The notes under the pieces: generated by a model
The model's input: only the letters and a program-made list of their open reading frames with translations
Database searches by the model: none
What the model was told of the DNA's origin: nothing
Shown: piece by piece, positions 23,608 through 58,800 of the stretch
Numbering within the stretch: position 1 is the first letter of the stretch
Layout: the number at the start of each line of letters is the position of its first letter
From: Takakia lepidozioides
Lineage: Eukaryota; Plantae; Bryophyta
Length of the DNA stretch: 64,000 nucleotides
Assembly: GCA_030704615.1 (NCBI GenBank)
Contig: CM060733.1
Span: 60,326,001-60,390,000 of the forward strand
Reading direction: 5' to 3'
Position numbers and translations under genes: made by a program

Positions 23608-26365
23608 ATGGAGGGCAAAGGTAAGGTAACTCACGTCCTTTCACCCTTGGATTTATAACCAGCTTTTAGGACACGAGAGCGCACATTATGTAGTACTCAG
23701 TTCAATTGTAAATGCTGGATATTCTGTCCCACGGTGTCTAGTGGTGGCTGGTTCAACATGCAGTTGGTGCTCATGGAGGAGTTGGCCTGACCTTTGCTTG
23801 AGGATCTTGTCATCATGCAATGAAAGCAACTTTATATGAGAGCTCTCTTCTTCCTGTTGTGGCCTTTGACAGTGTGCTTGGGCTTGTGTCTCGGTTGCTG
23901 GTGCTTCTAATTTTAGGGTAAAGCATCCCCATTTGTAGTGTGCTGGAGGCCACCTTAATCCTGGAAGCTTGGCCCTCTTGTTTTCCAAGGGTTTTCCCTG
24001 TAGGTCTTTGAGGGCTTGAATTTCCTTTGTGGCTTTTCTTAGGTGTTCCGAGGTGTTAAATGAAGATGTTGTCTAGTGAAGGGTCTTGCCACTTTGGGTA
24101 TGCGTGTAATTAGCGATAGCCTTGTGACATGGGCTCTGTTCAAAGTTTTGGCAGAGCAGTGACCAAGAAAGGGAAGGGTATCTCTAGTAGAATGTACTCA
24201 TAAGATGTTGTTTGCCGCAGCCTTGTGGCCATAGACACCGTGCCCAGGTTGCGCAGAACAAAAGAGAACAGATACTACCTTTGTGACGGGCTCACTCCAG
24301 TAGTGTGACTTACCTTGATAAAGACAATTAGTTCGAATTTTCCAGATATCCTCTAGAAAAGCCCTTCACACAAGCATCAACTTGCTGTGTGTGAGCTTCC
24401 CAGCAATTAGATCCCAACAGGACCAGGGCTTTCTAGGCTGTAGTAAGAGAGAAAGAGATACAAGAGTGTGCCTGAAATGGTCAGCGTACTGAAGAAGTCT
24501 ATTGTGATGCTGAGTTTGTTTGGCAGTGCTGGAAACTATGGACAAGCCGAATGTTGTTCCTCCCCACATTCCAGCCCATCAAGAAGGTATCAACCCCAAC
24601 CTATCACCAGCCATTTGCCCTTTACTTTCCTGTAGGGGCTGTGAGGTCACATATCCAAATGGCAATAGTGTGTGGCAATAGAAGTATGGAATGTTACCAG
24701 TCACAAATGCTGTAATCTTGCTGCCATTGACCCAGCAAGACCTCATCCGACGCAGTTGGATCACAATCTCAATTACAAGGAAATCATTAGGTCTGGGTCC
24801 TACACTAAACCTCAGAAAGAGAAAAATTTCTTTTGAACCTTTCATGGTGGTCCTGGCAGCTGTAAATAATCGGGACTATGGTTTCCTATCTAAGGCAGTA
24901 GAGGAGGCATATGAGGGGGTGCGATCTGGCGATGGAGGTCCTTTTGGGGCTGTGGTAGTGAAGGATGATCAGGTGATTGTGAGCTGTCACAACATGGTAC
25001 TCAGGAACATGGACCCAACTGCCCATGCCGAAGTCGCAGCTGTGCGTGAGGTGAGCTGCAAATATCAACTGGATATGACAAATTTGTTCAGCTCTCTAGG
25101 CAATATTTTAGTTGAAATGTTTTGTCTGTAACGAGACTGCCGTGAGCTGTCACAATGTTGCCATAGCAATTTTGGGCTTGGGTCCTCCCCTGGTGAATGA
25201 AAACCAACAAGCAATGCTGATTAGATGAGTAGTCTGCAGGCAACTGTGAACATAACAATACATATTGGTAGCCAGTCCTTCACAGGGCACAAGTATCCTT
25301 GTACATATGCCCCCCCTTTCATGTTTGTTACCAGCCCAATTGGCGTCAACACCTTCAAGTGGATCTGGAAGTGATATGTCCATGCACAGATTGTGAGATT
25401 TATGCCTCATGTGAGCCTTGTCCTATGTGTTTTGGCGCCATCCATTTATCGAAGATAAAGGTCAGTATCTTCTTTCCCTTCCTTACTGAATTTTCAGTTG
25501 GATCTCTGATCTGTGTTGCCATCCATGGATCCAAGCTTAATTTACTACAACTTCGGATAATCAAAGCTTTTGTCTCCTTTTTCAATTGGACAGTCATGGT
25601 TTTGCTCTGTGGCATATAGTCAAGGTGACTAGAGGTTGTAGCAGGCCTTAAAAGGGTGTCAGTGGCGGTATACCCCGGGGAGATTGGTTCTGTAGCTGTC
25701 CTAGAATTGCCATCATATTTTGTGGTGTGACATTAGTCTTAGAGCTAAAAGAAACGACGCTTTAAGGGATTGTCACTACCATCTGGGCTGAGTTTGTACC
25801 TCATGGCCAGCTCCAATAGGGTTGGGTATCCCAGTTGACTATGCCTCTCAAGATCTTTCACATCCCACAGGGGAAATCAAGAATCAATTATCGTGCCTCT
25901 TCACTGCACTGCAAGCAAACCTACACGTCACTCCTGTGTTGATCTTATGGCTCATTAGCCATTGGAAATTGAAGGTTTTGCTTGGAGTATATCAGTCTTC
26001 ATTTCTCAATGCCTGAGTACCCACAGCTATGTTGGCTGTTGCATGCGGTGGGTGGAAAGACATGACTCACTCTAGCTGGGTTTTATCCTGTGGGGGCTAC
26101 AAAAGGCTATAGCCAATGGGCACAAAGTATGGACAAGGATGTCTCTCTCACATGGTGTAGTATGTTTGTAATTCAGCGACTGGTATATGGAGCCCAAGCT
26201 GAGGCTGCACTGGCGATTGGCTTTGATGACTTCATAGCAGATGCCATCCGAGGCACTGCCTACTATCAAAAGGCAAATGTGGAGATAACACGGGCAAATG
26301 GCAGTGTAGCTGCAGCTGCTGAGGAGGTTTTCACCAACACCAAGGCTAAGTTTCAAATGTATTGA
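23608..26365 (+). CDS. GSDA: Guanosine deaminase (cytidine/deoxycytidylate deaminase fold)
   Basis: Exons 23608-23620 (MEGK, ccaccATGg), 24860-25050 (GGPFGAV..DPTAHAE), ~25335/25390-25460 (SCEPCPMC) and 26177-26365 ([22 protein letters not shown], the plant GSDA C-terminus). Confidence 0.92.
24192..24440 (-). mobile_element. 3'-end fragment of the RTEX-like LINE (older subfamily B) in a GSDA intron
   Basis: Reverse complement of the family 3' end (GTACTCATAAG..GCCTTGTGGCCA). Shares diagnostic bases with the copy at 42824. Confidence 0.85.
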
Positions 26366-55800: not shown

Positions 55801-58800
55801 TTGTACTCATAAGACGTTGTTTGCCGTAGCCTTGTGGCCATTGACCCCGCGCCCAGTTTGAGCAGGAGAGAGAGAGAGAGAGAGGAGGGAAGCTGGGGAA
55901 GGGAAGCAAAAGAATAGATCTGCAGATTCCCTTGCACCTCTTTAGCACATGAGATCTTAGTAAATTGTTGTGACATGGGCCAGCCGAAGTTGGTGATTCA
56001 TGCTATGGATGTAATGCGGAAAGCTGCACTGGATAGAGGAGGTGTGGATGGTGCAGCGTATCATGACAGTTTGCTGCTGCATCTCGTTAGAATGGGCATC
56101 ACCCAAGGCTGCCTTCCTATCATTCTTGTCTCATCCGACAGGTGCACCCCATCATGGTTCTTGCAATTTTTAGTCCCACAGAGTGTTTTGGGACAGGATG
56201 TGTTCTCTCTCTATCCGTCTTTCAGTATGATTGGCAATACAACCACAGTCACTTGTGTCACAGCTGTTTGAGGCAGAGGACTTGAGAAGCCACCCTGGAG
56301 TCAGCCTCATGCTTTCTGTCTAGTGTCAATGCCAGCCCTTAAATGAACACTCAATTCCAAGTGGATTTTGTCGGCTTTTCGGGTGCACTACGGCATTTCA
56401 GACTGAGACTACTGGTGGGGTGGACGATCCATGGGGGCTATGCTTTCAAGGGTATGCGCATAGCCATCATTCAAGGGAATGTCAATGAGGACATTCTCTT
56501 CATTTCTCTTGCTCCCTCTCCTTTTCCACCAGCATGCTTACAACCTTTCGTTTGGACTTTTAAAGCACTGCACACTAAGGAAGGGTTCAGCTTAGTGGCC
56601 AACAGAACTTTCTATGAGGCTGTGTATAGAAAGTGGACTCACAGCTTTTTTATGGTGTGCAGTTATTATTCGTGGCAGCTATATGAAGATTTTGGTGACA
56701 CTGATGTGTTCATTTCTCGCGAGGTAATGCTTTCTCCAAGTTGTTGATAGACAGAAAGTGCAGATATATCTGGAAACTGGATGGAATAGAGGATGGAGGA
56801 ATACTTGTTAAATTGATTGATTCATAGAGGGTGTGGATATTTACCAAAAAAGGTGGTGATTAGAGGGTAGGAGATATAAAATAGTAAAATTTTGTATCCT
56901 GTGAGAGAAGGACATATACAGTTTGATGTTGAGGTAGGGGATTCCATGCATATAAGAGTTTTTGGAATACAGGCTTTGGATGTCTTTGGCAACTTGAAGC
57001 CAAGCTATCCTTATGTAATCTGGTTCAGCTTGTTATTCATATGTTCTTGGGCTTGCGGGAATCCTTAGAGTGGACTCAGGAAGAATCTGTCCAGGGCCTG
57101 GGCAAGCTGTGAGACAGGCCTTTTCCATGTGTAATTTGCCAGCCTGGGGTCAAGATGTCATCTGCCTTGGAATCCCACTGTGGGCATTGGCAAGCATGCC
57201 ATGTTCGATATTCTCCAGTTTAAAATAGGGTTCTCGTCATGGAAGTCCACAATATTTTTTGCAAAGGGAAAAGGGATGAGCAGGTTTTTGGATGGACCCC
57301 GCAAGAAGCAGCACTTCATTTGGTCCCTGGTGTGGTCAGTGAAGCTGAGGTAGGTCTTTTCTTAGTCCCACTGTCTGTTAGGGCTCTCTGGAATCACTTG
57401 TACAGGATGATTGTTTTTGGAAAACTTGAGTAGACAGAAGGATCCAAGCAAATTAATCTGATGGTTTGAACTTGAGGTGCTATGCAATCATATGTGAAAG
57501 GGACAAGAACTGACCCAGTTGTGAATTGGAATGCGCAGTGGCGAGTTGTGTCAGGTGTACTGGGCCCCAATCCACGCCATCTCGCAGAGCTACAGTTCAT
57601 AAGACAAAGTCATGTCTTTTCTGAGTATGTGACATGCCCCTTTGCTCTCAGCACTTGGTCTTGTTGAGAAATTTCCTTTACAAAGAGCAAGTCATGTTGG
57701 TGTCAGTCTTCCAATAAGTGGCCAGAACTGGTAACCTGATGATCCCCGGTTGCTCAGTGCCCAACATTGCCCATCACTAGAAGGGAGACATATACTTACT
57801 GAAGACCAGTACTTGGGATTTCTGCCAGCACAATTCAGTTACCCACGCAGCATGAATGTTGTAGAAGTCTGGCTGAACATACTTAGGACTAAGCTGGCAC
57901 TCTGCTAACGGGAGAAGAAAGGGGTATGTTCACAGGCTCATAAAAGAGGATGATTCCACAACCATGGAGGATTCCATTGACCTCTACTTGGCATATTTGC
58001 AGGTAAATACATGGTCTCCATGCCGTGATTTAGGATGCATCAGTGAGATGACCTTGATGTTTTGTGAGTGCAGAATGATGAGTCTTCACAAGAATATGGC
58101 ATTATGGTCCAGTGATGACAGATATATATCATTCTTCATGTGCACTAAACTAAGTCTTACAAGCTTACAGCAGGATTCAGACAGTCTGTGGAATAATCAC
58201 ACCTCCAGCATACATTGAGATCCATTACCTGTGCGTAGGAACTGCTAGTATTGGTCGTGGCCATGTAAACCCCCTGCCTGCTCCAGGCCATGGTGCAGGC
58301 TACGATACCAAGTTGATTCTCATGGCACTACGAAATGAACATTTTAAAATAAATAATATTCTAAATTAGAACCTTAATGATTTGCAAGTCTTTAGAAGCT
58401 ACTCATGTCTTTATTTGTGTGGCTTCCCTTCTTAAGAGGGCAGTCAACCACTCCATGTTTTTCCTTCCTCCAATTTTCCTGCCCTGGTGTTAGAAGGATA
58501 TGTGGCACCTATAGATGAGTGTGCGCATGTCACTTAGTGGGAGAACTGGAGCGTTGTGGAATTAGTAATGAGTATTCTGTAACAGCACACAATTTGGTTT
58601 GTTGATGTTGCAGGTGACAGCAGTTGATCCAGCAATCGATGTGGCGCTGGGGTTACTACAGGAGTTTGCTGACAAAGCCAGGCTGGACCACATCAGCAGC
58701 CATGTGCTCCAGCATGGTGCACCCTGGAGGCATCCACCCAAAACCCCTCACAAGGACAAGCAGCACCAATGGGCCCAGCTGCAGATCATGGACCTCATTC

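Follow-up and report, generated by a model that had tools for sequence, protein, structure and literature searches.

A LINE family that prefers CT-starting target sites in a 64-kb window of the Takakia lepidozioides genome

Some long interspersed nuclear elements (LINEs) that carry an apurinic/apyrimidinic-like endonuclease (APE) insert into microsatellites, and the Kibi elements of fish are described as APE-type LINEs inserting into (TC)n arrays (Kojima & Fujiwara 2004, as summarised in PMC3812793). How such elements choose microsatellite targets is not well understood (PMC3812793). In RTE-related LINEs and short interspersed nuclear elements, the first nucleotides of the target-site duplication (TSD) correlate with the microsatellite-like 3' end, and it has been proposed that the repeat in the RNA helps to choose or to prime the nick site (Nishiyama & Ohshima 2018, PMC6007223). 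The LINEs of flowering plants are L1 and RTE, while the RTEX families of green algae all have microsatellite-like 3' repeats (PMC3747384, Table 3); RTE and RTEX elements have been reported from brown algae (PMC4421812), and RTEX is described as encoding ORF1 proteins, some of them with an esterase (PMC3905857). Here we describe a LINE family found in a single 64-kb stretch of the moss Takakia lepidozioides (contig CM060733.1, positions 60,326,001–60,390,000; hereafter the window, numbered from its first base), which offers about seven independent insertion sites. The window probably samples a high-copy, recently active plant APE-type LINE that prefers target sites starting with CT or made of (CT)n, and that is found in introns mostly because introns supply CT sequence and tolerate insertions. 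The moss element is a plant counterpart of a few microsatellite-preferring APE LINEs known from animals. It resembles Kibi in being an APE-type element within TC/CT microsatellites, with the repeat on the sense strand and on both flanks. It differs from that sequence-specific animal element in also using CT-starting sites that are not repeats, Kibi being compared by description only.

The copy set was defined by self-BLAST with the longest copy together with local alignment. It consists of 11 pieces that derive from 10 insertions and share the 3' end ...TTATGAGTACA(A/T)T (identities are to copy A; genes 1 to 3 are mapped below):

17454–17517, + strand: old 5'-truncated copy 17454, ~79% identical (78–79% range)
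24193–24432, − strand: old 5'-truncated copy 24193, 78% identical (78–79% range)
33701–37542, − strand: copy B, collinear and 5'-truncated, 96.4% identical; intron 3 of gene 2, antisense
37564–37673, − strand: copy 37564, 110 bp, 5'-truncated, 99.1% identical; intron 3 of gene 2
40239–40463, + strand: copy 40239, 5'-truncated, ~82% identical; intron 7 of gene 2, sense
40484–40747, + strand: copy 40484, 5'-truncated, ~82% identical; intron 7 of gene 2
42823–43694, − strand: old copy 42823, 5'-truncated, 70–77% identical; intron 10 of gene 2, antisense
44325–44388, + strand: short copy 44325, 5'-truncated, 92% identical; intron 13 of gene 2
44418–46292, − strand: copy A, inverted 5' part with the 5' end, the N-terminal extension and the APE domain; intron 13 of gene 2
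46293–49213, + strand: copy A, 3' part with the reverse transcriptase (RT), the C-terminal CCHC motif and the stop; intron 13 of gene 2
55801–55867, − strand: copy 55801, 67 bp, 5'-truncated, 98.5% identical; intron of gene 3, antisense

A first-pass annotation, made from the sequence without database searches, had proposed the common 3' end, and a 25-nt pattern of it (up to three mismatches) indeed matched the window seven times against zero matches expected from shuffles. The nine positions listed in that annotation all belong to the family, but the copy at 17454 had been missed, and position 44418 marks the inverted 5' half of A, whose common 3' end lies at 49188–49213 and not at 44418. Its remark that the family is absent from the first 15 kb holds as well, as self-BLAST returned no copy in 1–15 kb of the window. 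The family had further been called young, which is true of four copies (37564, 55801, A and B; 96.4–99.1% mutual identity) but not of the remaining ones, which are only 70–92% identical to A. Since identity to A spans 70–99.1%, the family has been active over a long time. When four other public runs were compared with A, many contigs were at least 99% identical and the depth climbed steeply toward the 3' end, as expected of a high-copy, 5'-truncating LINE. A scan of metagenome contigs with the 24-nt 3' end gave no match.

The element is about 4.8 kb long and carries a single open reading frame (ORF) of about 1,450 codons, which encodes, in this order, an N-terminal extension, the APE endonuclease, the RT and a C-terminal CX2CX10HX4C knuckle. 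The RT domain was recognised by Pfam RVT_1 (2.5e-31, 109 bits), with L1 ORF2p (2e-33) and R2 (2e-27) as its best PDB matches. Exo_endo_phos scored 33.2 bits for the APE domain of B (cut-off 24.5) and 24.1 bits, just below the cut-off, for that of A; the region also gave a weak match to Exo_endo_phos_2. The string LRAGSLPL, read in the translation, precedes the knuckle, whose region matches zf-RVT weakly (E 0.16), and the relative P0052 reaches the zf-RVT cut-off. Every part of the architecture given by the first-pass annotation, namely APE, RT and a terminal CCHC with LRAGSLPL, was thereby recovered from Pfam and the translation. No separate ORF1 was seen: the 560-aa N-terminal ORF matches only the APE domain in Pfam, with no esterase match. 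In A the stop codon TGA (49205–49207) is followed only by GTACA(A/T)T before the flank, and the 3' untranslated region (UTR) is about 6 nt long and lacks a poly(A). With its RT, its APE, variable 5' truncation, a common 3' end and TSDs, the element is an APE-type non-LTR (lacking long terminal repeats) retrotransposon.

Both long copies are damaged. The ORF of B is broken at two places into three pieces, and A has a frameshift through a 1-nt deletion near 46520–46524 relative to other copies represented by public-run contigs. In addition, the first ~1.9 kb of A are inverted relative to the 3' 2.9 kb, with an overlap of 8 bp (ATCATAAT) at the breakpoint; inversion and overlap together form the pattern left by twin priming; other copies are collinear across position 46293 (seen at a loose end in the public run X5). 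This twin-priming signature is a case in a non-L1-like plant LINE. The N-terminal extension spans about 300 aa and includes three 47-aa repeats in A, encoded by three 141-bp units at 45171–45594; B holds fewer units (37346–37542), so that the repeat number differs among elements.

The insertion sites of the family are marked by CT sequence. The window contains ten pure CT/GA runs of 10 bp or more. Seven of them border a copy at a distance of no more than 8 bp, each time with CT on the sense strand of the element, which confirms and strengthens the contact with CT/GA tracts reported in the first-pass annotation. The first bases after the last T of the element are CT in nine of the ten insertions, B being the exception. 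Three TSDs include unique bases, namely the perfect 13-bp CTCTCCATCTCAA of copy 17454 (17441–17453 and 17518–17530), the 16-bp CTGTCCCACYGCTCTC of copy 37564 (37674–37689 and 37547–37562) and CTCTCTCTCGGTT of copy 40484 (40469–40481 and 40753–40765), and all three start with CT directly after the last T of the element. In two of them the duplicate on the 5' side is preceded by A and not by T, and therefore the T is to be counted as element and the CT as target. Copy 24193 is followed by CTACTAG and has CT-rich sequence on its 5' side.

Longer CT tracts are found at several other sites, among them these two runs:

40209–40231, + strand: (CT)n run 5' of copy 40239, without an older copy upstream
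49214–49228, + strand: (CT)n run directly 3' of A, matching the left-flank run 44389–44415

Copy 40239 has (CT)n on both sides, and copy 55801 is embedded in a (CT)n tract (55787–55800 on its 3' side and 55866–55884 on its 5' side, GA on the + strand). Copy 44325 is followed by the CT run 44389–44415, into which A was inserted, and the match of this run to 49214–49228 is thus the CT-tract TSD of A. The same microsatellite is present at both ends of 40239, 55801 and A, whose two flanks share 14–15 nt of (TC)n and thus carry a CT-tract TSD. Copy 42823 has (CT)9 on its 5' side (43692–43709, GA on the + strand) and only CTGTG after its 3' end. The truncated copies 40239, 42823 and 55801 all have (CT)9–11 on the 5' side with no older copy upstream, and because they are truncated at different points, this CT run is not part of the element. 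Head-to-tail stacks are formed by 37564 on B, 40484 on 40239 (inserted into the CT run behind that copy) and A on 44325; the public-run contigs contain more such joints with short CT spacers, together with one 5' junction preceded by (CT)8. A simple tandem duplication was considered for 40239 and 40484 and rejected, as 40484 extends 33 nt further toward the 5' end of the element than 40239 does. Taken together, the CT runs on the 5' side, the TSDs with unique bases, the matching runs around 40239, 55801 and A and the CT start in nine of ten insertions identify the CT tract as the target and not as a synthesised tail, and the element is without a tail of its own making. Since copies 17454, 24193 and 37564 sit at CT-starting sequence that is not a repeat and B lacks CT, the preference is for a CT start, with (CT)n favoured, and not a strict microsatellite specificity. 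The sequence-directed targeting proposed in the first-pass annotation is supported by the (CT)n on the 5' side, by the CT-starting TSDs and by the stacks.

Relatives of the element were found outside the moss. In protein databases the closest match has 47% identity, and the named matches are Ectocarpus and the green alga Myrmecia; no land plant is among the matches, which is weak evidence, as the ORFs of plant transposable elements (TEs) are rarely kept as proteins. Five metagenome or assembly contigs (L003, L004, L006, L007 and L008, one of them from a Tara sample) and the Ectocarpus locus L005 share ~37–47% protein identity with the moss element over the APE, the RT and the C-terminus. In the five contigs the element closes with the stop TGA and a GTA directly behind it, after which four continue with (ATT)n, and the 3' end of the closest relative reads TGAGTACATTATTT. 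The Ectocarpus ORF stops with TAA and has an AGAGTA motif ~20 nt downstream without a microsatellite run; it was left out of the hairpin alignment. The common terminus and the hairpin next to it lie at:

L003:4591–4682: TGAGTA terminus and hairpin region
L004:6389–6480: TGAGTA terminus and hairpin region
L007:3917–4008: TGAGTA terminus and hairpin region
L008:5686–5777: TGAGTA terminus and hairpin region
L006:2985–3076: TGAGTA terminus and hairpin region

The hairpin (UGGCN-4 nt-N'GCUA) is situated ~25 nt from the end, within the coding region, and is kept in three moss copies and the five relatives (~40–47% protein identity). Its closing pair covaries (CG, GC, AU, GU), and 98.4% of the cells are paired, a value reached by 2 of 500 shuffles, with slid controls at 12–50%. 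The conserved hairpin is probably a recognition signal of the RT, the alignment of this coding region being suggestive evidence only. The terminus conserved in the relatives implies that the near-absent 3'UTR and the terminus itself are properties of the lineage, whereas the associated repeat differs between lineages: the contigs and the moss element have the TGA+GTA end and the hairpin in common, but four of the five contigs then have (ATT)n where the moss element has CT. ATT-rich sequence is also present at the 5' junction of L003 (L003:220–290), a hint that insertion beside the repeat next to which the element ends may be common to the entire lineage.

With regard to known clades, the moss element can be compared with several. 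It resembles RTEX in the absence of poly(A), in the association with microsatellites and in its named relatives, which are algal (Ectocarpus, Myrmecia), and differs in its single ORF, without a separate ORF1 and without an esterase match, although an ORF1 is perhaps not obligatory for RTEX. The tails reported for algal RTEX are (CA)n, (CAA)n and similar, whereas the repeat here is (CT)n and, by the TSDs, derived from the target. Membership in RTEX, the label given in the first-pass annotation, is defined by RT phylogeny (RTclass1), and the moss element was compared with RTEX by described features only. Neither Pfam, nor the ESM Atlas, nor the PDB, whose only RTs for comparison are those of L1 and R2, settled the clade. 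To RTE it is similar in the very short 3'UTR, the lack of poly(A) and a TSD start that correlates with the microsatellite-like sequence at the 3' end. Three points fit an element of the RTE group: the 3'UTR is tiny, the copies are associated with microsatellites, and the named relatives are algal. The single ORF does not fit, given that RTEX is described as encoding ORF1 proteins. A further difference lies in the signature reported for RTE, in which the TSD starts with T and a T stretch is found ~10 nt upstream of it (PMC6007223). The moss element also has the C-terminal CX2CX10HX4C, and a single ORF combined with CCHC does not fit classical RTE. RTE ORFs, which are short and single and encode APE and RT, are not known to carry a C-terminal CCHC. 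Elements of the L1/Tx1 group have ORF1 plus an ORF2 with a C-terminal CCHC, and a poly(A) or a target-specific end; the moss element has the CCHC, no ORF1 and no poly(A), and L1 ORF2p matches its RT only slightly better than R2 does. Kibi belongs to this Tx1/L1 group.

Three host genes were mapped in the window:

24538–26362, + strand: gene 1, guanosine-deaminase-like, with coding exons at about 24538–24591, 24859–25065, 25386–25472 and 26171–26362
31785–49624, + strand: gene 2, TMEM185-like (Pfam Tmemb_185A), 14 exons placed with full-length homologues as tblastn queries
31785–31931, 32740–32907, 33184–33267, 38274–38360, 38862–38951, 39577–39657, 39867–39953, + strand: exons 1–7 of gene 2
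40960–41235, 41602–41814, 41998–42084, 43747–43818, 43937–44017, 44116–44211, 49541–49624, + strand: exons 8–14 of gene 2
53928–60232, + strand: gene 3, multi-exon, 12 exon blocks that are conserved in locus L001 of a relative and follow the same order there
53928–54074, 54552–54947, 55357–55563, 55981–56142, 56658–56741, 57281–57352, + strand: exon blocks 1–6 of gene 3
57524–57634, 57943–58005, 58605–58829, 59427–59534, 59910–60002, 60128–60232, + strand: exon blocks 7–12 of gene 3

Gene 1 was identified by Pfam dCMP_cyt_deam_1 (4.9e-11) and by PDB chains of the Arabidopsis guanosine deaminase (3e-23). The best named relative of its deaminase exon is Physcomitrium patens, with 88% identity, which supports the earlier assumption of a land-plant host. 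The exons of gene 2 are collinear with the full-length homologue P0254, and its introns 3 (B, 37564), 7 (40239, 40484), 10 (42823) and 13 (44325, A) hold seven LINE pieces, so that LINE DNA makes up ~10.3 kb of its 17.8-kb span. Upstream of this gene lies a GA-rich segment (26400–31700, 7.4 GA hexamers/kb), and not every CT/GA tract is occupied. The gene 3 intron 55564–55980, bounded by a GT donor and AG acceptor, holds copy 55801. In L001 and L002, the relatives that are collinear with gene 3 at exon level, the introns do not align with those of the window, and neither of the two contains the LINE family. Around copy 17454 (15–24 kb) only sub-threshold Pfam matches (CSTF_C, 18.4 bits against a cut-off of 24.3) and no PDB matches were obtained; the ORFs at 18344–19043 (− strand), including 18344–18721, have a motif like that of S-adenosylmethionine-dependent methyltransferases, also sub-threshold in Pfam, and may represent a fourth host gene near this copy. 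Two ORFs in the copy-free 1–15 kb (943–1563, 12939–14537), one carrying a SWIM zinc finger and the other an RNase H domain, fit other transposons.

The first-pass annotation had placed all copies in introns of three genes. Eight of the 11 pieces do lie in introns, but of two mapped genes (seven in gene 2 and one in gene 3); copy 17454 is unplaced, and copy 24193 lies 5' of the deaminase ATG (24538) at a distance of 106 bp, with in-frame stops between, so that its location is the 5'UTR or the promoter and not a demonstrated intron. Once the copies and 35 bp on each side had been masked, the count of CT/GA hexamers was 3.7/kb in introns and 1.27/kb in 1–15 kb, a roughly threefold difference.

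These observations have to be weighed against two other explanations, one for the repeat and one for the introns. The element itself could have synthesised the (CT)n as a microsatellite tail, with essentially random integration and with the CT on the 5' side produced by stacking on older tails. Such tails would not be out of place, given that microsatellite-like terminal repeats are known from green-algal RTEX and from plant RTE families (PMC3747384, Table 3) and that the relatives retrieved here end in (ATT)n; the CT on the 3' side of the copies varies in length from 0 to 13 units, and the left CT run of A is the very run that follows an older copy (44325). Stacking does not, however, account for the three (CT)n runs on the 5' side that have no older copy upstream, nor a synthesised tail for TSDs with unique bases whose CT start recurs in the duplicate on the 5' side, a duplicate preceded by A and not T in two of three cases; moreover, copy 42823 is preceded by (CT)9 but followed by CTG only. 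We therefore regard an element-made tail as very unlikely.

As for the introns, the family could, besides its sequence preference, be steered actively towards introns or transcribed gene bodies, by way of chromatin marks or of the machinery for transcription or splicing, with introns as a safe haven. The eight intronic pieces and the copy-free 1–15 kb speak for it, as does the share of independent sites: about five of seven are intronic, while introns account for ~21% of the length of the masked window and for ~31% of its CT hexamers (binomial p ~0.006 and ~0.03, respectively, both post hoc and from a window chosen for the pattern). Apart from being post hoc and so selected, the count is small, one copy lies upstream of a start codon and another is unplaced, and the orientation relative to the host gene is mixed (four sense, four antisense). 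Furthermore, selection would remove exonic insertions, and old insertions in TE-dense DNA are overwritten. With CT hexamers about three times denser in introns and insertions tolerated there, the pattern can be accounted for without gene-body targeting; direction to gene bodies, which the first-pass annotation had inferred, is not demonstrated by some seven sites, and we consider it unlikely. A more far-reaching combination appears quite improbable to us: two-layer targeting, in which a preference for a CT start or (CT)n set by the endonuclease or the RNA end would be joined by a true preference for transcribed gene bodies, with introns as a safe haven and the family as a main driver of intron growth, within an undescribed cross-kingdom LINE lineage that has an RT-recognition hairpin and a TGAGTA terminus in its coding region and a microsatellite preference that switches between its branches, with (ATT)n in the metagenome and assembly relatives and (CT)n here.

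The preferred reading, that of a CT-directed LINE whose intronic location follows mostly from CT supply and tolerance, has its own difficulties. The 3' end of copy B is not followed by CT, and at least three insertions at CT-starting non-repeat sequence reduce what might have been a strict specificity to a preference. A (GA)10 tract (31019–31038) and the GA-rich 26.4–31.7 kb carry no copy. No empty allele was seen in the four public runs, which lack the unique flanks, so that pre-insertion sequences are reconstructed from TSDs only, and the hairpin is part of coding sequence, in which protein constraint could explain some of the conservation. The preference may be set by the endonuclease or by pairing between the RNA and the target, and the sample is one 64-kb window with ~7 independent sites.

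Under the reading of a CT-directed element, integration could proceed as follows. The 5' truncation, the TSDs of ~13–17 bp and the one twin-priming inversion are hallmarks of target-primed reverse transcription, and the TSDs place the first-strand nick at N^CT on the top strand, that is, 3' of AG on the cleaved strand. The endonuclease would cut GA-rich DNA on the bottom strand, directly 3' of AG, guided by a GA preference of its own, by pairing of the RNA end with the (AG)n 3' OH, or by both. The RT may recognise the hairpin in the C-terminal coding region, and read-through (CU)n or simple microhomology may help to prime on the (AG)n 3' end. A source copy within a CT tract has no terminator and would therefore give read-through RNA ending in (CU)n, which would reinforce the preference for CT. 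Each insertion retains a CT tract on its 3' side, and later copies thus come to stack head to tail. The intronic location would then mostly reflect where CT tracts occur and insertions are tolerated, without a separate gene-sensing step.

The family is a natural data set on the microsatellite targeting of LINEs, as it is young and present in high copy number and has TSDs that place the nick to the base, and close relatives appear to have switched from (ATT)n to the (CT)n used here. With regard to annotation, copies of 64–110 bp that lack poly(A) and have almost no 3'UTR are easily missed or taken for the flanks of CT microsatellites. In the host plant, the family occupies and preserves CT tracts and accounts for over half the length of one gene of the window, which makes it relevant to the evolution of intron size and to the microsatellite markers of this moss.

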